DNA from: Hyaloraphidium curvatum SAG 235-1
Taxonomy: Eukaryota > Fungi > Monoblepharomycota
NCBI GenBank assembly: GCA_025558095.1
Contig: JAIVFI010000046.1
Span: 1-64,000, forward strand
DNA length: 64,000 nucleotides
Reading direction: 5' to 3'
Shown: positions 5,386-35,300 of the stretch, in pieces
How the letters are laid out: the number at the start of each line of letters is the position of its first letter
How positions within the stretch are numbered: the stretch's first letter is position 1
Notes under the pieces: generated by a model
The model's input: the letters and a program-made list of their open reading frames with translations, nothing else
Told to the model about the DNA's origin: nothing
The model's database searches: none
Made by a program: the position numbers and the translations under genes

Positions 5386-6766
5386 ATGCAAGCCGTGCGG
5401 CCTCCCTCGAGTCCCTCCTCCCTGGCCGGGCGTCCGGACCTCCGTCCGTGCAGCCGCGCCGGCGCCGACCCCGCCTCGCCGCCGCGGCGGTGCTTCCCGG
5501 GACCCAACGCCCGCACCCTGTCCTCCAGCAGCAGCTCAGGGTCCCCCGACCCCGCCGACGACGCCGGTGCGGACGGGGAGGACACCTACTCCCACGGCCG
5601 GGCGCGGCGGCGGGCGTACAAGATGCTCCGCTTCGTCGGCGCGGGCGCGTCGGGAACGGTCAGGGCCGCCGTGAGCCTGCAGACTGGCGAGGTCGTCGCG
5701 CTCACGGCCTCGCGGAAGCAGACGCCGGCGGACGACCCTGGGTCCGAGATCGCTTTCGGGCCCTGGGACGCGGAGATTCGCCGGCGCTACGCGGTGATGG
5801 CGGAACTGCGTCACCCCAACCTGGCGCGGATACACGAGTTCTTTGCCACTGCGAACAAGTTCTATGCGGCCATGGAGCTCGCCGAAGGAGGGGTGGGTCC
5901 ACGTGGCATCCCGCCCACCCCGACGCTCTCTGACCAGCGCTGCTGCAGAACCTCGAGAGCTACGTCGGCCGCGGGAAGATGCTCCCCGAAACCGACATCC
6001 GAGTGGTGCTCCAGGCCATTCTCGACGGACTTGCCTACCTCCACAGCCACCGCATCGCGCACCGCGACGTGAAGCCGGCCAACGTCCTCCTGCGCCGCCA
6101 ACAAGACCTCTCCTCGGTGGTCCCCGCCGACTTTGACGGCTCCTTCGTCTCCGACGGCAACGAAACCTCCCCCAACATGCGGACCCTCGTCGGCACGCCC
6201 TTCTTCCTCGCCCCCGAGATTGCCCTCGGCCGCCCGTATGGGATCCCCGTCGACGTCTATTCAGCGGGCTGCATCGCCTTCTACCTCGCCTGCGGCCGCA
6301 CCCCGTTCGAAAACGCCACCAGCTTTGACCGGCTCTACCATCGGATCTCGACCGGCGACTGGCGGTTCCCCAAGGGCGCGACGTGCCGGCCGCCCTTGAG
6401 GACCTCGTGCGGCGGATGCTCGCGACGGACCCCGCAGGAAGGATCGCAGCGTCGGGGGCACTGGACCACCCGTTCTTCGCAAAGGCGAGGCGGAGGCTGA
6501 GCGGCGTGGAGGTCTGGTACGATCTGAGCACGGGTGAGCTGGTGGCGTGCAGCGGAGCCGAGGCGTGCAGCGCGCTATGGACGGGGACCAATGTGCACTC
6601 TGCTATCCAATACCTGGACTTCCTGCGCTTCTATGCGCGACGTCTTGACGACGTGGACCTAGAGTGCTGTCTGTCGTCGGGATCGGGTAAGCTGGCGGCG
6701 CTCGGGGGTGCAAGTGGTTTAGGGACCACTCGCCGGAACGAAACCGCCCGCGTCCCTCGGCTATGA
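5386..6766 (+). pseudogene. Kinase copy 4; intron 5893-5948; catalytic Lys lost and 1-nt frameshift near 6381
   Basis: Splicing GTGGGT..CTGAC..TGCAG joins MELAEGG to NLESYV. VALT replaces VAxK. The frame switches from WRFPKGA to PAALEDL, where copy 5 reads [13 protein letters not shown]. Confidence 0.75.
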
Positions 6767-6991
6767 ACCCGCGGCGCATGCGGTGCCTGAACCGATACTC
6801 GGGACTGTTCGCTCTGCATCCTGGGACCACCGGGCGGTGACCGGATCGGAGAAAGGCGCCGACTCGTGGTTTGCCAGGGGAGTTCGCAGGGGATCCCGGA
6901 ATCTGGGCCGGCCTCGACCGAGTGTCCCCTGCACCGCTTCCCGCTCGTTCCCCGATTCCAATCCCGCCGCCTCTTCCCCAGTTCCTTCCGT

Positions 6992-8217
6992 ATGGCGCAC
7001 CCTGCTCCTACGTGGACCACAGCGGCCGGAGACCTCCCAGATCTCCGCAGCTGGAGGCGGCCGGCCGTGCGGCCCCTCGCCGGCCCGGAGGAGGCGGCCG
7101 CGGTCGTCGACGCCCGCCGCCCGTCGGTGGTTTCGACGACGTCCTCCGACGGGGCGCCCGCCGAGTCGCCCGACGCCGTCGCCCGCGGCCGGGCGCGACG
7201 CAGGGCCTACCGTTCGTCGCGCACGCTGGGGAGCGGCGCGAGCGGGACCGTGCGGGCGGCGGTGAACCGGGAAACAGGGGCCGCGGTGGCGATAAAGGTA
7301 ACCCGCCGCGGGGGCCCCGTGGACGACTGGGGCCGGTCGGGAGGGACTTCCGGGACCGCAGAAGAGGCCGGGCGCCGGTTCGACGCGCTGGCTTCCCTGG
7401 AGCACCCGAACGTGCTTTCCGTCGTCGAGTTCTTCGAGACCCGGCGAGCCTTCTATCTGGTCATGGAGCTCGCCGACGGAGGGGTAAGCACTATCGCGGG
7501 GCGACAAGGCTGGGTTGGTTCTGACGAGCCCCCGCACAGGACCTGCAGGACTATGCGCGGCGCCGGGGGACGCTCGAAGAGGACGACATCCGCGGGGTAC
7601 TGCGGTGCATCCTCCGCGGCCTGGCCTACCTCCACGCCCACGGCATCGTCCATCGCGACGTCAAGCCTAGCAACGTGCTCCTCCGGCGGCGGGACGACCC
7701 GCGCTCGGCGGCCCTGGCCGACTTCGATGGCTCCTTCTTTTCCCGCGACGACGCCGGGGGAACACCGCCCAACATGCGCACCCTCGTCGGCACACCCTCG
7801 TACATGGCACCCGAGGTCGCCCTGGGCCGCCCGTACGGGGCCGAGGTCGACGTCTACTCGACGGGCTGCATAGCCTTCCACCTTGCCTGCGGGCGGACGC
7901 CGTTCCAGGATGCAGGCAGTTTCGAGGAGCTCTATCAGCGCATATCGGCCGGAGTCTGGCGGTTCCCGGAAGGCGCAAAAGTACCCGCCGCGCTCGGCGA
8001 CCTCGTCGGGCGGATGCTCGAAACCGATCCCGCGAAGCGCATCTCGGTGGCGGAGGCGCTCGACCATCCCTTTCTCGCCGAGTCCAGGCGCAAGCTGAGC
8101 GGGGTGGAGGTGATGTACGATGAGGGCACGGGGGAGCTGGTGGCCTACTGCAGGCGCGAGGAGCCTTCGGCGTGGTCCGAGCGCGGGGAAGCAGGGGTCG
8201 TGGAGAGCGCCGTATAA
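6992..8217 (+). CDS. Kinase copy 5; exons 6992-7483 and 7540-8217
   Basis: GTAAGC..CTGAC..CACAG intron (7484-7539) joins MELADGG to DLQDY; [22 protein letters not shown]. Confidence 0.85.
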
Positions 8218-8389
8218 TGTGGAGCCCGCCTTTGTCATCCATCTGCGACCGGTCTGTCTTCAGGTGAGAACGGCTGTGTCGGAAACCGATCGGGAAGGGC
8301 GAGCGGCTCGGCATGGAGATCCCCAAAAGGTCCACGACCATGATCATTTGCAGCTGCTATGTAAGCAAGGCAAAAGCAGCAGCGCAAAC

Positions 8390-23838: not shown

Positions 23839-25527
23839 ATGCAGCGCCTCGCCCGGTGCGCGTCCGTCGCGGCGCTGCTGCTCGCCGCGCTCGCGGGCGC
23901 CGCCGCGCAGCCGTCGGGCTATGCCGGCCCCGCGACGGCCAACCCCTCGCGCACCTCGCCCGCCGCCAATGCCGCCCCCGCCACGACCCGCACGACGACG
24001 ACGGTGAACCCGCTCTTCCTGCCGCGCGCCTGGTCGCCGTTCAAGGACTACAAGGAGGGCGAGGTGGCCGTGGGCGCCGACGGGAGGAACTACGCGGCAA
24101 AGTACTGGAACCGCAACACCACCGTCACGCCGACCCCGGGCGCGTCGCAGGACGACATCGACGGCTGGGCGTGGAAGCCGGCGACCGAGGCCGACGTGCA
24201 GAAGCACATCCAGTGGTGGTCCTCGTGGTACAGCTCCATCACCGCGACGCCCTTCACCAAGACCGAGGCGGACGTGTCGACGCCCATGATCGAGACACCG
24301 CAGCCGACACCGCTCAAGAACCGGAACAAGGGGTACGGCATGGTCCCGGCGGCGGGCACGCGCGTGAACAAGGGGTGGATGTGCATGGAGTGGATCGACG
24401 ACATGGGTGGGCGGCGGCTCCCCGGCGGGCTCGGGCGTCCTCATCTCACCTCCGGCGCCACGCAGGCTACACCTTCCCGGTCCGCATCATCGGCGCCGAG
24501 CCCGGATCCGACTCGGGCGGCAACCCCGCCTGCCTGGCCACCAACTACAACAAGACCTCGTGCAACTACGTCTCGACGTGGTTCGGCGCCCTCGGCTCGA
24601 CGCCGTGGTCGGTGCAGTTCGGCAACTTCGAGCGCTGCCAGCAGCTCGTGGATTCGCTCAACGAGACGTCGCCCTACATCATGTGCGGGTCCGAGCACAA
24701 CAAGACGTTCGGCTGGCCCGGGTACGACGAGACGGACCCCAACTCGTGGTGCTCCGCCGCGGCGCTGGCGCTCGACATCCGGCCGGACCTGGAGCGCACG
24801 CACACCAACTCGGGGCCCATGAACACGACCTTCGAGAACGCCGCGGGACGGGTGGGTTGCCGATCGCCTGCCGCATCATCCGTCCCCTCATTTCCGTCGC
24901 GTCCAGCCCCCGAACTACCCCACCAAGGAGGACCGCCCCAACCCCCGCCCCGAGGACGAGCTCATGGCCGAGTGCATCACCTGGGGCTTCGGCTGCCTGT
25001 CGTGCGACGAGATCCGCTACGCGTGCACGGACGGCCACAGGAAGTCGTGCGAGTACCTGCACCTCATCCCGCCCAACTGCCCCGGCGACGGCGTCAGGGA
25101 CCCGGCGATGGAGTGGTACTGGCAGCGCGTCGGGGGCGAGTTCCCGCACAGGAGGTACACGCAGACCACCGGGCGGACGGCCACGCCGGTGCCCGATCCC
25201 GAGACGGAGAAGCCGGTGTTCAAGACGGACGCGAACGGGGACCACATCACCGAGGCGTGGGGCGGGCCGGGGGCGACGATCACGGGCGAGTGGCAGACGG
25301 TCTCGGGGATTCCGACCACGACGACGACGCGGTCGCGGGTGCCCGTGAGGACCACGGCGTCGGCCGCTGCCAGCTCGGCGGCGGGGACCTCGTCGTCGGT
25401 TGCTGCGGCTTCGGCAACCGGCACCCTGGTCACCGTCACCCCGACCAGGCCTTCCTCCGCTGGTCGGGCCGCCGCCGCAGGCGTTCTCGGTGTGGCTGCG
25501 GCGCTGGCCGCCGCTGCCGCCATGTGA
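23839..25527 (+). CDS. Secreted, probably GPI-anchored Cys-rich protein with a CBM5/12-like module; about 2 introns
   Basis: Signal peptide; WSPFKDYKEGEV..DGRNYAAKYW..TP..W motif; Ser/Thr-rich stalk; hydrophobic C-terminus GVLGVAAALAAAAAM. Confidence 0.7.
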
Positions 25528-25637
25528 GAGGATGTTCTTTGGGCTACTTCGGTTCTTCGTCGAGGCGGGTATTACGTGCGGTGATGTAGTTTATTCGCCA
25601 TTGAATAGCGATGCGAATCAGTTCGTGACAATTCTTG

Positions 25638-26710
25638 CTACGCGGAAGCGGAGATCGACATGCGGCACGCGATCTGGCAGAGCGCGGCCCGTCCCACCGA
25701 GGCGCACAGGGCCTGCCTTCCGGCCTTGCTGAGTGCGGGTGATCCCACTGAGGCGCAGAGCGCCTGCCCCGTCGCTTCGGCAGGCGGCTTGAGGCAGAGC
25801 GCGGCCCCGCGTCCGATCTTCGCCTGCTGCTGCTTGCCCCCCGCCAGGCTTTCGATGATGCCCCAGCATAGCGCTGCCTGGCCCGTGTCCTGCACGGCGG
25901 GCTTCGGGGCGCAGAGGCCGCCCCTGGCGCAGAAGGCCTTGCCGGCCGACTTGGCGGGAGGCTTGAGGCACGGAGCAGCGCCGGAAAGGTCTCCCGTTAC
26001 GCAGAAAGCCCCCTTGCCGGCCCTCGTCGAGGGATCCCAGTACATGCAAAGCGCGAGCCCGGTGTCTGCCTGGTTGGCTGCGGGGGGCTTCAGGCACAGG
26101 GCGTGCTTGGCGCCCGCCAGGTCGGCCTCCTTGAAAAGGACCGCGCAGAAGCCTTCCTTGGAAGCTCCCCCGCAGTCGTCGTCCTTGAACAGGGCGGCGC
26201 AGTCCGCGTCCGCGTCCGGGGACATCTCGTTTCCCCACATGGCCGGCGGGTCCTCGCCAAAGGCGGCGCGGTAGGCCCGCAGCCCCTCGGCGTAAGCCTC
26301 CGACATGGCGCCGCGCTGCTCGGCGGGGGTGTCCTCGGGGTCGGCGGGCACGTGGTGCATGAACCCGCCGGGCCCGAGGAGGGCCCGGGAGAAGGCGGCG
26401 TAGTCGATGGTGTGGAGGATGTGCGCGTGCCTGTTATCCAAGGCGACCCGCGTCAGATGTTGGCACCATGGTCGGATCGCAGGAAGGAGACCCACCAGAT
26501 CTCGTCGACGTCCAGGCAAGGCGGCATGCTCACGCCCCTCGCCGCCAGCGTGGCGAACCGGCGGTACTCTTCGACGGCGGCATCGGCGCGGGCCTCGGTC
26601 CACGACGGGTGCTCGCGGAGCACGCGGCGGCGGACCTTGGTGAGGTCGACGGCGGCGGCGGCTGGGTGGAGGAGGTTGAAGGTGATGGTGGGGGTGGGGG
26701 TGGACGACAT
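25638..26710 (-). CDS. GRDP/DUF1399-like domain fused to a Cys-repeat tail, copy A; intron 26431-26495
   Basis: EEYRRF..PPCLDVDEIW|HAHILHTIDY..FMHHVP..YRAAFGEDPP..W, then about 15 [A/G/D]-x-C motifs. Confidence 0.8.
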
Positions 26711-27189
26711 GGTATTTTGCGCGGGTTGTTGGTTGGGCTGCTTTGAGGGGAGGTTGCGTGGTTGCGCTAGGTCGCTTTGCTTTCGGTGCTTGGTATGGTG
26801 GAGGACCGCTGCAAGTGCGGGATGATATAGCTCTCGGAAGGCTACGCCGCTTGCCGGTCTTCCGTTCCGCAATGACTCCGCTCCGCGGGGCTGTCCGGTT
26901 CCCGGTTCTAGAAGGTGGCGGAGGGATGTGGGGCGGAGCAGCACAGCCTCGACGTCACGCCCGGCCCGTCGTCTCCCACGGCTTCAAACCTCAAGTGGTG
27001 GGCGTCGTGCAAGCCTGAGAAGGGCGTTGGACACGAGCAGCGCCATCATTGCTGCCTTGCAGCGCCCTCGATCGAAGTATCCTCACTGTTCCTCGGAACA
27101 TTCCGTATTCAGCCCTGTCTCCCCAAGGACACGGCAAACATCGAATCCGCCCTTTGGCCCCTTGAGTCGCTCACCAACAGCCTCCCGAA

Positions 27190-28232
27190 ATGACCTTCGA
27201 CGTCCGCGGGCGAGCCGCCCTCGTTTCGGGCGGCACCGAGGGCATCGGCCGCGCCGTATCGGAGCGGCTGCTCTCCGCCGGCTGCCGCGTCGTCGTCGCC
27301 TCCCGCGACGCCACGGCCGCCGCCATCGCCGTCGCCGAAATGCGCGCCAAATGCGGCGTCCCGGAATCGCACCTCGTCCCCGTCAAAATGGACATCTGCG
27401 ACCGCGGCAGCGTGCGGGCGGCGTGGGACTTTGGCGTCGCGCTGCACGGCCGCGTCGACGTCGTGGTCGCCAACGCCGGCTTCGCGGGGGAGAACTACCT
27501 GCGGGACTGCCTACTGCCGGGCGACGACGGGCCGTGGATCCGCGGGATCGAGGGCAACCTCGTCGGCACGCTCCTCCTGTGCCGGCTCGCGGCGTCGGCG
27601 TGGCTCGAGGACGGGATGCCCGCCGCGTGCGTTATCACGTCGTCGACCAGCGGGCTGCACGGGCTCTTTGGCGCGTCGTACGCGGCCCCGAACCTTTCCT
27701 GTGGGTCTCTTCCGACCGCAGCCGCAGCACGCTCCTCATCCCCTGCTCCGCCGCGTAGACCTCGTCGCCAAGAGCGGCCAGGTGCAATTTGCCTTTGCGC
27801 TGCAGGGTACGCTCGAATCCCTCGCCCGGGAACGCGGCCAGCCCCGCTCCCCGATCCGGGTGAACGTCGTGATGCCCGGCCCCGTGTGGACCAGGATGCT
27901 GCAGAAGGACGGGTCGGAGATCCTTGTAGGCCCCCTCGCGCCGTGCTGCCCTCCCTCAGCCTGATCATCGTTCGCTGCAGGGAAGGGAGATTGCGTCCCC
28001 CGAGGACATGGACCGCGCGCTGCCCGGCTTCTCCTCGGGCAGCGGGGGATGGACGCCGATGGACGGGCTTGTCGACGTGTTCTGGAGCGCCATCACGGAC
28101 GAAAAATGGCGCGGGCGGGCGTACGTCGTTTCGGGCGACGGTGGGGAACCAAAGAGGTACCCGAAGGGGTTCGTGTTCGAGGACTACCTCTCGAGGAAGC
28201 GGGGGCCGCGAGGGCCGGCGGTAAAGATGTGA
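27190..28232 (+). CDS. Classical SDR (15-hydroxyprostaglandin dehydrogenase-like), copy A; introns 27701-27758 and 27925-27980
   Basis: SGGTEGIG, VVANAG, spliced YLVAK catalytic motif, VNVVMPGPVWT. Confidence 0.85.
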
Positions 28233-32725: not shown

Positions 32726-33757
32726 TCACATCCTGGCACCCGGCATGCTTGCGCCCCGCTTCCTCGACACGTAATCGTCGACCTCGAACTGCCGCGGGTA
32801 CCTCCTGGCCTCCCCCCCCTCGCCCGAAACCGCGTACGCCCGCCCGCGCCATTCCTCGTCCGTGACGGCGGACCAGAACGCGTCCACCACGCTCTCCATC
32901 GGCGTCCAACCTCCCGCCGCATCCATGGAGCCCGGCAACGCCCGCTCCACGTTCTCGGGGGTGGCGACTTCCCTGCGCTGCGTCGGGAGTCAGGGTCGAG
33001 CGGAGGTGGCCCGTGGGCGGGAACGCACCAGGACAGCCGACAGGTCCTTCCGCATCATCCTGGTCCACACGGGGCCGGGCATGACGACGTTGAACCTGAT
33101 CGGGGAGCGCGCGAGGCCACGCTTCCTGGCTTGCGCTTCCGCCAGCCCCTGCATGTTGAGCGCGAACTCGATCTGCCCGCTCTTGGCGATGCAGTCTGCA
33201 TGCCGGGTCAGCGCCGCCGACGGATCGGGGCCCGCAGGGAACCCACACGACATGGCATTGTTCGGGAGCCCGGCGCCGTGGAGCCCGTGTATCCCGGCCA
33301 TCGACGAGGTGATCACGCACGCGGCGGGCATCCCGTCCGCGAGCCACGCCGACGCCGCGAGCCGGCACAGGAGCAGGGTGCCGACGAGGTTGCCCTCGAT
33401 CCCGCGGATCCACGGCCCGTCGTCGCCCGGCAGTAGGCAGTCCCGCAGGTAGTTCTCCCCCGCGAAGCCGGCGTTGGCGACCACGACGTCGACACGGCCG
33501 TGCAGCGCGACGCCAAAGTCCCACGCCACCCGCACGCTGCCGCGGTCGCAGATGTCCATTTTGACGTGGACGAGGTGCGATTCCGGGACGCCGCATTTGG
33601 CGCGCATTTCGGCGACGGCGATGGCGGCGGCCGTGGCGTCGCGGGAGGCGACGACGACGCGGCAGCCGGCGGAGAGCAGCCGCTCCGACACGGCGCGGCC
33701 GATGCCCTCGGTGCCGCCCGAAACGAGGGCGGCTCGCCCGCGGACGTCGAAGGTCAT
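32726..33757 (-). CDS. Classical SDR, copy B (inverted paralog of 27190-28232); 2 introns
   Basis: N-terminal half nearly identical to copy A; spliced YCIAK; C-terminus diverged. Confidence 0.85.
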
Positions 33758-34236
33758 TCCGGGAGGCTGTTGGTGAGCGACTCAAGGGGCCAAAGGGCGG
33801 ATTCGATGTTTGCCGTGTCCTTGGGGAGACAGGGCTGAATACGGAATGTTCCGAGGAACAGTGAGGATACTTCGATCGAGGGCGCTGCAAGGCAGCAATT
33901 ATGGCGCTGCTCGTGTCCAACGCCCTTCTCAGGCTTGCACGACGCCCACCACTTGAGGTCTGAAGCCGTGGGAGACGACGGGCCGGGCGTGACGTCGAGG
34001 CTGTGCTGCTCCGCCCCACATCCCTCCGCCACCTTCTAGAACCGGGAACCGGACAGCCCCGCGGAGCGGAGTCATTGCGGAACGGAAGACCGGCAAGCGG
34101 CGTAGCCTTCCGAGAGCTATATCATCCCGCACTTGCAGCGGTCCTCCACCATACCAAGCACCGAAAGCAAAGCGACCTAGCGCAACCACGCAACCTCCCC
34201 TCAAAGCAGCCCAACCAACAACCCGCACAAACTACC

Positions 34237-35300
34237 ATGTCGTCCACCCCCACCCCCACCATCACCTTCAACCTCCTCCACCCAGCCGTCGCCGCCGTCG
34301 ACCTCACCAAGGTCCGCCGCCGCGTGCTCCGCGAGCACCCGTCGTGGACCGAGGCCCGCGCCGATGCCGCCGTCGAAGAGTACCGCCGGTTCGCCACGCT
34401 GGCGGCGAGGGGTGTGAGCATGCCTCCTTGCCTGGACGTCGACGAGATCTGGTGGGTCTCCTTCCTGTGATCCGACCATGGTGCCAACATCTGACGCGGG
34501 TCGCCTTGGATGACAGGCACGCGCACATCCTGCACACCATCGACTACGCCGCCTTCTCCCGGGCCCTCCTCGGGCCCGGCGGCTTCATGCACCACGTGCC
34601 CGCCGACCCCGAGGACACCCCCGCCGCGCAGCGCGGCGCGATGTCGGAGGCTTACGCCGAGGGGCTGCGGGCCTACCGCGCCGCCTTTGGCGAGGACCCG
34701 CCGGCCATGTGGGGAAACGAGATGTCCCCGGACGCGGACGCGGACTGCGCCGCCCTGTTCAAGGACGACGACTGCGGGGGAGCTTCCAAGGAAGGCTTCT
34801 GCGCGGTCCTTTTCAAGGAGGCCGACCTGGCGGGCGCCAAGCACGCCCTGTGCCTGAAGCCCCCCGCAGCCAACCAGGCAGACACCGGGCTCGCGCTTTG
34901 CATGCACTGGGATCCCTCGACGAGGGCCGGCGAGGGGGCCTTCTGCGTGACGGGGGACAATGTCGGCGCTGCTCCGTGCCTCAAGCATCCCGCCAAGACG
35001 GCAGGCCAGGCCTTCTGCGCCAGGGGCGGCCTCTGCGAACCGCAGCCCGCCGTGCAGGACATGGGCCAGGCGGCGCTCTGCTGGGGCATCGTCGAAAGCC
35101 TTGCGCAGCAGGCGGAGATGGGACGCGGGGCCGCGCTCTGCTTCAAGCCCCCCGCCAACGCTGCGGGACAGCAGGCACTCTGCGCCTCAGTGGGATCCCC
35201 CGCACTCGGCAAGGCCGGAAGGCAAGCCCTGTGCGCCTCGGTCGGGAGGGTCGCTCTCTCCCAGATCGCGTGCGCGGCGGTGCTGTCTGTTTCCGCGTAG
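34237..35300 (+). CDS. GRDP/DUF1399-like domain fused to a Cys-repeat tail, copy B; intron 34452-34516
   Basis: Splicing gives DVDEIWHAHILHT; tail of ALC/AFC/GFC/APC repeats. Confidence 0.8.

Follow-up and report, generated by a model that had tools for sequence, protein, structure and literature searches.

What does a domain with conserved histidine and aspartate residues do with fifteen cysteines tethered to its own C-terminus? The question is raised by a gene of Hyaloraphidium curvatum SAG 235-1 that lies in GC-rich eukaryotic DNA of the window (the whole 64,000-nucleotide stretch that was analysed). A preliminary description of this DNA had proposed a His/Asp domain, an acidic linker and a tail of one-Cys cassettes, an architecture that the sequence bears out.

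Gene structure and transcription

The gene is read from the sequence as two exons on the minus strand (26710..26496 and 26430..25638) with a product of 335 amino acids. Exon 1 (26496..26710) starts at the ATG at 26710 and comprises 71 codons plus the TG of a split Trp codon. These carry the domain through its N-terminal half, to PPCLDVDEIW, and the exon boundary is common to the window gene and the paralogs. The intron (26431..26495, minus strand) is spliceosomal and 65 nt long (GTGGGT...CTGAC...AG). It interrupts the Trp codon (TG/G), that is, the invariant W/H of the WHxH motif, with DVDEIW encoded on one side and HAHILHT on the other. Exon 2 begins with the C-terminal half of the UCP032817-like domain (26232..26430, minus strand; HAHILHT.DY...G.F.HH.P...Y..F...MWG). 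After MWG, it continues with 197 residues that make up the acidic linker and then the Cys-bearing tail (25641..26231, minus strand), followed by the stop codon (25638..25640, minus strand).

A transcript contig of 966 nt from the public run X1 spans 25621..26651 on the minus strand, extending 17 nt beyond the stop codon, to 25621. Exactly the 65-nt intron is absent from it, with GT..AG ends. The same run skips two introns of the adjoining SDR gene and so behaves like a transcriptome. The window gene is therefore real, transcribed and spliced as predicted, and the joining of DVDEIW to HAHILHT by splicing, as assumed in the preliminary description, is confirmed by the contig, which skips exactly the predicted 65 nt. 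In the searches described below, the window exons were used singly, and the full-length annotated paralogs P0002–P0006 served as proxies in profile searches and folding.

Family and fold of the domain

The domain had been called DUF1399-like. Neither window exon matches PF07173 (DUF1399) in a Pfam scan of the single exons, and the full-length paralogs P0002–P0006 score 14.1–17.2 bits, below the gathering score of 22.7 bits, with the match limited to about positions 87–141 of the 143 of the profile (the last third). A genome-wide search with PF07173 gave no match, but neither did any of its controls, and it carries no weight here. Membership of PF07173 at threshold is thus ruled out, and the earlier call has to be moved to a sister family, PF27765 (UCP032817-like; Pfam 38.1). 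This family is annotated on P0002–P0006, which share 68–77% identity in the domain with the window exons, and on other homologs found in the analysis. In the ESM Atlas, PF27765/PF07173 clusters are the closest whether sequence features or shape is compared; the PF27765 clusters are mostly bacterial, contain proteins of about 130–155 amino acids and often also have GRDP-like matches. We assign the window domain by sequence to PF27765, on the precomputed annotation of the paralogs rather than on a direct match to the model.

The proteins of PF27765 and PF07173 have the same N-terminal domain as the window protein, with ..EYRRF.. followed by D..WH.H...T..Y and G.F.HH.P. The window motif DVDEIW/HAHILHTIDY...GPGGFMHHVP fits the family pattern D..WH.H...T..Y...G.F.HH.P. 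In an alignment of 79 diverse family members, the D, W, H, T, Y, H and P columns are invariant, and the E, Y, H, G, H, Y, F and W columns are conserved in at least 90%. The constellation is probably a metal or substrate site, as predicted from these sequences. Members of PF27765/PF07173 have no biochemical activity on record, and the literature on DUF1399 and GRDPs is confined to plant phenotypes. One Symbiodinium member is labelled 'CBWD5' (zinc-chaperone-like) at source, a name that was set aside, as no Pfam match backs it.

AlphaFold2 predicts from the 79-sequence alignment a domain of six helices (pLDDT 91.5, pTM 0.85). No relative was found in the PDB by fold (best Foldseek E value 0.36; best VIA Z score 3.6 against 48,161 chains), and none that is usable by sequence profile. 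Neither the profile comparison nor the fold comparison with the PDB gave any resemblance to a known enzyme. Among the family members tested, NCBIfam gave no match apart from TIGR04222 in one fusion protein. In the Atlas, the domain model matches just its own family, including diatom proteins in which it is fused to ubiquitin- or SUMO-like domains. In the AlphaFold2 model of a full-length paralog, the tail is disordered (pLDDT 20–44). The preliminary description had entertained the docking of a tail Cys at the His cluster; the paralog model gives no sign of the tail docking on the domain.

The cysteine tail in H. curvatum and across the family

The tail of the window gene has 15 Cys in 197 residues (7.6%), and the contexts listed for them in the preliminary description match the sequence exactly in all 15 cases. 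Thirteen of the 15 are in the context [AG]-x-C, as against 4.9 expected from shuffles (0 of 20,000 shuffles reach 13; p < 1e-4), and nine are in A-[LF]-C. The cysteines are spaced 4–24 residues apart, CxC and CxxC are both absent, L or F is located beside most of the cysteines and there is a single His in the 197 residues. The product has no N-terminal hydrophobic stretch or transmembrane (TM) segment (maximum Kyte–Doolittle value 1.1–1.2), in agreement with the earlier claim that it lacks a signal peptide. No conserved cleavage motif was found in the tail, with K/R just loosely enriched at positions −3 to −5, and the DNA of the tail has no tandem repeats beyond a 6-nt unit.

The genome of H. 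curvatum contains eight paralogs, two in the window and six on contig C28 within about 35 kb; P0002–P0006 are five NCBI 'hypothetical proteins' of this organism. The position of the intron is the same in all eight. Over the C-terminal (exon 2) part, the domains are 68–100% identical to that of P0002, with one locus at 100%, and the tails are 79–197 residues long with 6–15 Cys. The second gene copy in the window is located on the plus strand (exon 1, 34237–34451; intron, 34452–34516; exon 2, 34517–35300). Its exon 2 product is 90% identical to that of the window gene and has 14 tail Cys, the differences being mainly in the spacers, and the introns of the two copies differ at 2 of 65 positions. 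Both copies are part of an inverted duplication, one arm of which (25842..27674, 1833 nt) is 97% identical to 33273–35105. Most of the window gene is inside the duplication, together with the 5′ part of an SDR gene (adh_short) that is oriented head-to-head with it and begins at 27190 (plus strand); the divergent intergenic region between the two genes (26711..27189) is also included.

Across the eight tails, A is found at −2 of 72 of the 90 Cys and L or F at −1 of 56 of the 90, and the +1 residue is hydrophobic or small. The A-x-C context is enriched over shuffles in seven of the eight paralogs (p ≤ 0.0013); the exception, C28_464k, has the shortest tail and is not significant. Among the paralogs, dN/dS is about 0.1 for the domain and 0.2–0.7 for the tails. 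As the values for the tails are below 1, they give no sign of diversifying selection. The tail of paralog C28_445k is made of seven tandem cassettes of 33 nt, which have diverged at synonymous sites (pS 0.36, pN/pS 0.43) and retain A-F-C-x-P-K, with the Pro at +2 encoded by all four codons. Since the motif is kept through this synonymous divergence, it is under selection and not merely the trace of a recent duplication. The cassettes of the window gene, in contrast to those of C28_445k, are old and diverged. Judged from these comparisons, the domain is strongly constrained, and the tails change fast yet keep A-[L/F]-C.

When 1.84 billion representatives were searched exhaustively with a profile (E ≤ 1e-3, clustered at 50% identity), the domain family came to 4218 clusters. 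Among the best 132 of the 4218 with the WHxH motif, 95 have tails of at least 10 residues, and 76 of these 95 tails have at least two Cys; in the same 132 representatives, Cys makes up 7.9% of the tails and 2.3% of the domains. Many tails among the best representatives are exact cassette repeats. The tail of the jakobid Andalucia godoyi (P0009) contains AALCFARNTDSSAEK four times, that of the amoeba Arcella contains GTCGSGTCSAGNCSGKVTE five times, and further members contain KKIAPSGSCSTG, KKAGCGNCHGK or SCNGCNGTCGGEGKE, each eight times. Typical bacterial members of PF27765 differ from the window protein in being 130–155 residues long with a short tail or none, as compared to 15 one-Cys cassettes. 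The bacterial copies come from Chloroflexota, Actinomycetota, Proteobacteria and CPR lineages, and bacterial tails carry short conserved Cys clusters (e.g., CxRTNCKPQKCR and RCxDHACHVPTSCACR). Many tails in the family are CxxC- or Gly-rich or carry short conserved Cys/His clusters that resemble ordinary metal sites.

The cassette type A-hydrophobic-C-hydrophobic is found in Hyaloraphidium, in the jakobid protein P0009, in metagenomic relatives (P0008) and in a bacterial metagenomic tandem pair (P0102 and L044), where it takes the forms A-[TA]-F-C-Y-V (six copies) and A-Y-C-Y-V-x-K-P (about 11 copies). In a quick tree, the fungal paralogs cluster with Andalucia and four metagenomic long-tail proteins (SH-aLRT 97), and the bacterial pair is placed outside this fungal–Andalucia clade. 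The cassette is therefore either old or convergent. The preliminary description had predicted that homologs would carry Cys-cassette tails of variable copy number, and this holds: there are 6–15 Cys in the paralogs, four copies of AALCF in Andalucia and six and about 11 in the bacterial pair. Other homologs are fused to TM segments, TIGR04222 or ubiquitin-like domains instead of Cys tails. Domain–TIGR04222–GC-tail fusions are seen in P0152 and L041; in Lysobacter, one such fusion has GGCGG as its tail. The invariant residues of the domain are also kept in homologs without a Cys tail, so the domain has a role that needs no Cys tail in cis.

Genomic context and the role of the tail

Peptidases or transporters had been expected near the homologs. 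In about 25 loci, covering the fungal, other eukaryotic and bacterial genes, no tailoring enzyme, peptidase or transporter recurs beside the gene. The 17 bacterial loci, found with an eight-sequence alignment, have no common neighbour beyond local synteny, and no rSAM, YcaO, LanM, MNIO, peptidase or exporter was found among the conserved or immediately flanking genes scanned at these loci. For contig C28, coding ORFs were chosen by GC3 and then scanned. The neighbours of the paralogs are mixed (glyoxalase, α/β hydrolase, thioesterase, F-box, kinase, UvrD and PDR ABC transporter); these heterogeneous housekeeping-type genes rule out a biosynthetic cluster around the C28 paralogs. The SDR gene was likewise rejected as a conserved partner. 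It adjoins only the two window copies, because of the segmental inverted duplication, and is absent beside the C28 paralogs; the SDR near the relative P0007 is unrelated to the window SDR. Beside tail-less bacterial members, we looked for a split arrangement of enzyme and small Cys-peptide gene and found no convincing ORF. Three further neighbours are single cases: one paralog has a PDR ABC transporter about 3 kb away, P0007 adjoins a reprolysin gene, and the close relative P0011 adjoins an ankyrin-DHHC palmitoyltransferase gene.

MNIO enzymes were considered as a partner in trans. The genome of H. curvatum gives no match to the MNIO family (PF05114), the control genome being positive. MNIO genes are absent from three of five bacterial genomes with homologs; in Ferrimonas, the MNIO gene is about 145 kb away, and in Lysobacter, the MNIO and the domain gene are on differently numbered contigs. 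Being absent from H. curvatum and from three of the five bacterial genomes, and not adjacent in the other two, MNIO was discarded as a partner. With respect to multi-core RiPPs, the loci have no linked modifying enzyme, and no release signal (cleavage motif, peptidase or exporter) recurs. A conserved domain with a variable tail is the layout of a RiPP precursor and equally that of any protein with a variable tail.

Several known systems share part of this layout. Plant BURP-domain peptide cyclases of the lyciumin/moroidin type, the subject of PMC12037056 and PMC8672867, are autocatalytic and need no separate tailoring enzyme. They combine repeated short cores and a His-containing metal domain in one polypeptide. 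The window protein, however, has no CH motifs or signal peptide, and a BURP domain is absent from the Pfam scans of the window exons and the paralogs. Its domain stands at the N- instead of the C-terminus, Cys takes the place of Tyr or Trp as the repeated residue, and it has no known product. In the fungal borosins (OphMA-type), enzyme and substrate tail are fused in one protein, and the window gene encodes a fungal protein in which a putative enzyme and a tail are joined in a comparable way. The differences are that the window protein has no SAM-dependent methyltransferase (no methyltransferase family was found in the Pfam scans of the window exons and paralogs) and that a borosin has one C-terminal core rather than repeated cassettes. 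TIGR04222 membrane proteins and bufferins, which are putative or proven substrates of MNIO enzymes, resemble the window protein in layout: the N-terminal module is conserved, and the C-terminal tail behind it bears Cys and is unstructured. PMC12452194 proposes MNIO enzymes as modifiers of the Cys tails in TIGR04222 proteins and suggests that the N-terminal moiety may contribute to the biogenesis of these proteins. The absence of an MNIO gene from the H. curvatum genome sets the window protein apart, as does its being cytosolic, with no TM segment or signal peptide. Metallothioneins and metallochaperone tails share with the window tail a Cys-bearing, low-complexity, fast-evolving segment without a fixed fold; at 7.6% Cys, with no CxC/CxxC clusters and with single cysteines in conserved hydrophobic flanks, the window tail differs from metallothioneins.

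This last likeness leads to an account in which the tail, comparable to a dilute metallothionein or to the variable Cys/His tail of a metallochaperone, would passively buffer or store soft metals such as Cu(I), Zn or Cd, to be handled or delivered by the His-lined domain, with no covalent modification. Such a reservoir would fit the Cys enrichment of the family tails, many of which contain CxxC, CGNCH, GC-rich stretches or short conserved Cys/His clusters, and the conserved His/Asp residues of the domain. It would also fit the fusion of some members to TIGR04222 with Gly/Cys tails, a class discussed together with the copper-binding bufferins (PMC12452194). The tails of the window gene and its paralogs fit it less well: there is a single Cys per cassette, 9–24 residues from the next one, the window tail has neither CxC nor CxxC and one His in 197 residues, and its Cys content is far under metallothionein level. 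The hydrophobic flanks (L/F and I/L/F) and the conserved A at −2 are not required by metal ligation. We regard the reservoir as somewhat unlikely. Alternatively, the domain could be independent of a tail that is a fast-evolving, low-complexity appendage, acting as a redox-sensitive or disulfide-cross-linking spacer, with A-x-C arising mostly from duplication. The disorder and relaxed constraint of the tail and the 33-nt tandem repeats of C28_445k would be expected of such an appendage, as would the many alternative appendages across the family. The plant GRDPs, which combine DUF1399 with a Gly-rich low-complexity tail (PMC4299439), resemble the window gene in joining the domain to such a tail. 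Descent alone is nevertheless inadequate to explain A-x-C, because the motif has outlasted saturating synonymous change inside C28_445k, occurs in paralogs with otherwise unalignable tails and is found in phylogenetically separate bacterial members. An independent appendage therefore seems improbable.

Two further accounts involve enzymes encoded elsewhere. The protein could be a classical RiPP precursor, in which the domain would be the leader or recognition part (as in Nif11 and NHLP), an unlinked enzyme would modify the cassettes and proteases would release them. The conserved N-terminal module, the variable multi-cassette Cys tails and the exact repeats in many homologs are consistent with this, and precursors remote from their enzymes exist in other systems, the precursor genes of the prochlorosins being dispersed away from the enzymes. 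In leaders, however, an invariant His/Asp/Tyr/Thr constellation is not usually retained from bacteria to eukaryotes. None of the about 25 loci contains a co-occurring candidate enzyme, H. curvatum has no MNIO, and neither a conserved site of cleavage nor a signal peptide nor a dedicated exporter was found; this makes a classical precursor quite improbable. S-acylation would give the cassettes the role of a reversible, cysteine-string-like membrane tether that replaces the TM segments of other members. It draws on the hydrophobic contexts of the tail cysteines, on the TM helices that other members have instead of Cys tails and on the DHHC palmitoyltransferase gene next to P0011. That neighbour is one case, the A at −2 and the downstream K/P-P are left unexplained, and the same cassette type is found in bacteria, which to our knowledge have no DHHC enzymes. 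We consider acylation highly improbable.

The reading that we favour, if tentatively, is that the domain handles the tethered tail cysteines in cis, with binding or modification predicted at the His/Asp site. It is preferred because the conserved flanks of the cysteines (A at −2, L/F at −1, a hydrophobic residue at +1 and frequent K/P-P) exceed the needs of simple metal ligation and because the domain is the sole component that is co-inherited with the A-hydrophobic-C-hydrophobic motif. The window gene encodes a cytosolic two-module protein of the PF27765/GRDP-like superfamily. The first module is the six-helix domain of about 140 residues, which carries the invariant constellation in a fold without a solved relative. 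The second is the disordered tail, which offers 15 thiols, each in an A-[L/F]-C-hydrophobic motif that is often followed by K/P-P. Tails grow and change through duplication and substitution of cassettes, with selection retaining the motif. In this reading, the domain would bind or chemically alter the tethered cysteines at the His/Asp site, making the protein a self-contained thiol-cassette system. We infer metal binding by the domain, its action in cis and the chemistry.

A narrower form of cis handling, in which the domain would be a metal-dependent enzyme of new fold acting on the A-hydrophobic-C-hydrophobic cassettes of its own tail, is in our view unlikely. A self-modifying RiPP is a possible reading, and excision of peptides, as in a true RiPP, is unsupported. 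Several observations speak against handling in cis: the domain has neither a known nor a predicted enzyme activity, it has no PDB relative, and the model shows no docking of the tail. The invariant residues also occur in tail-less homologs, many tails look like ordinary metal sites, diversifying selection is not seen, and no peptidase or exporter is linked.

No mention of UCP032817, PF27765 or PIRSF032817 was found in the full-text literature, and we found no earlier description of the pairing of this domain with Cys-cassette tails; the combination of a GRDP-like domain with a low-complexity tail was already known. The family comprises over 4000 clusters in bacteria and eukaryotes and has no known activity and no solved structural relative. 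Cys-bearing tails are very common among its best matches, and selection maintains the A-hydrophobic-C-hydrophobic type in a fungus, in a jakobid and in bacteria, with no linked enzyme. A domain of unknown function thereby gains a concrete hypothesis, namely that it engages in thiol chemistry with its own tail. Should the cysteines be modified in cis, the protein would represent a new autocatalytic system of post-translational modification and a first RiPP-like class from the monoblepharids, an early-diverging fungal lineage. If the domain were a cis-acting enzyme, a partner-less self-modifying or RiPP-like class would extend across bacteria and deep eukaryotes, with an eight-gene expansion in Hyaloraphidium. 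If the tail cysteines instead bind metal, the architecture would be that of a new metallochaperone. The finding also offers a biochemical lead for the plant GRDP proteins of stress and development.

An inverted duplication and its transcripts

The Cys-tail gene (25638–26710, minus strand) and its second copy (34237–35300, plus strand) lie in an inverted duplication with arms of 1833 nt, located at 25842–27674 and 33273–35105 of the window. The arms are 97% identical, not exact, and contain most of the Cys-tail gene together with the promoter and the 5' part of the adh_short SDR gene (start at 27190, plus strand); the flanks are far more diverged, at 72–84%. Between the two window copies, dS is higher for the tail (0.16) than for the part of the domain encoded by exon 2 (0.06), which suggests either that the domain has undergone gene conversion or that the tail mutates faster.

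A contig from the public transcriptome-like run X1 covers 26840–27607 and differs from the window sequence at seven positions. It probably derives from the second copy (33.3–34.1 kb), 97% identical here, and reads of the two copies are therefore not cleanly separable in this interval. The upstream neighbour at 24964–25527 (plus strand) encodes a product with a Cys-containing N-terminal part, a stretch rich in Thr, Ser and Ala, and a hydrophobic C-terminal end; a Pfam search of this product gave no match, and its layout in sequence looks GPI-anchor-like. Word depth in X1 is 688 for the contig of this gene, the top of the stretch, and 25 for the Cys-tail gene.

Paralogs and relatives with Cys-containing tails

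Six further paralogs, found on both strands, share a stretch of about 35 kb on a second H. curvatum contig (G000 contig C28, 445.7–479.1 kb), as read from loci L001–L010, L013, L014 and L017–L021. The paralog at 457.0–457.9 kb is missing from the word-search matches to annotated proteins. Unrelated genes lie between the paralogs (glyoxalase, alpha/beta hydrolase, thioesterase, F-box, kinase, UvrD helicase and PDR ABC transporter).

On a bacterial metagenomic contig, two UCP032817-like genes are found in tandem (L044, 3487–4410 and 4716–5576; also L045), their tails containing about 11 A-Y-C-Y-V-x-K-P cassettes and six A-[TA]-F-C-Y-V cassettes. Upstream of the pair lies a CHASE histidine kinase, and about 1 kb downstream a TauD-family dioxygenase. 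P0098 and its cluster members from Symbiodinium natans end in a (CG)n-like Cys tail and carry the source label 'CBWD5'. Pfam scans of two labelled members detected neither a CobW domain nor any other, and a merged gene model is the probable source of the label. P0011, a close relative with a Cys-rich tail (L043, 4579–5292), lies upstream of a gene for a DHHC palmitoyltransferase with ankyrin repeats (6480–8309), at a distance of 1.2 kb; this single case is only a lead for the idea of S-acylation.

Fusions of the domain

Ubiquitin/SUMO-like (Rad60-SLD) domains are fused to the domain in other early fungi and in stramenopiles (P0016 from Allomyces javanicus, P0075 from Chlorochromonas danica, and three ESM Atlas rows), the Allomyces fusion having three domain repeats. 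A Lysobacter protein (L041, 5872–7356; also P0152) combines the domain with a TIGR04222 membrane domain and ends in a GGCGGCGG tail. The fusion connects the domain family to proteins for which a role as MNIO substrates has been proposed (PMC12452194).
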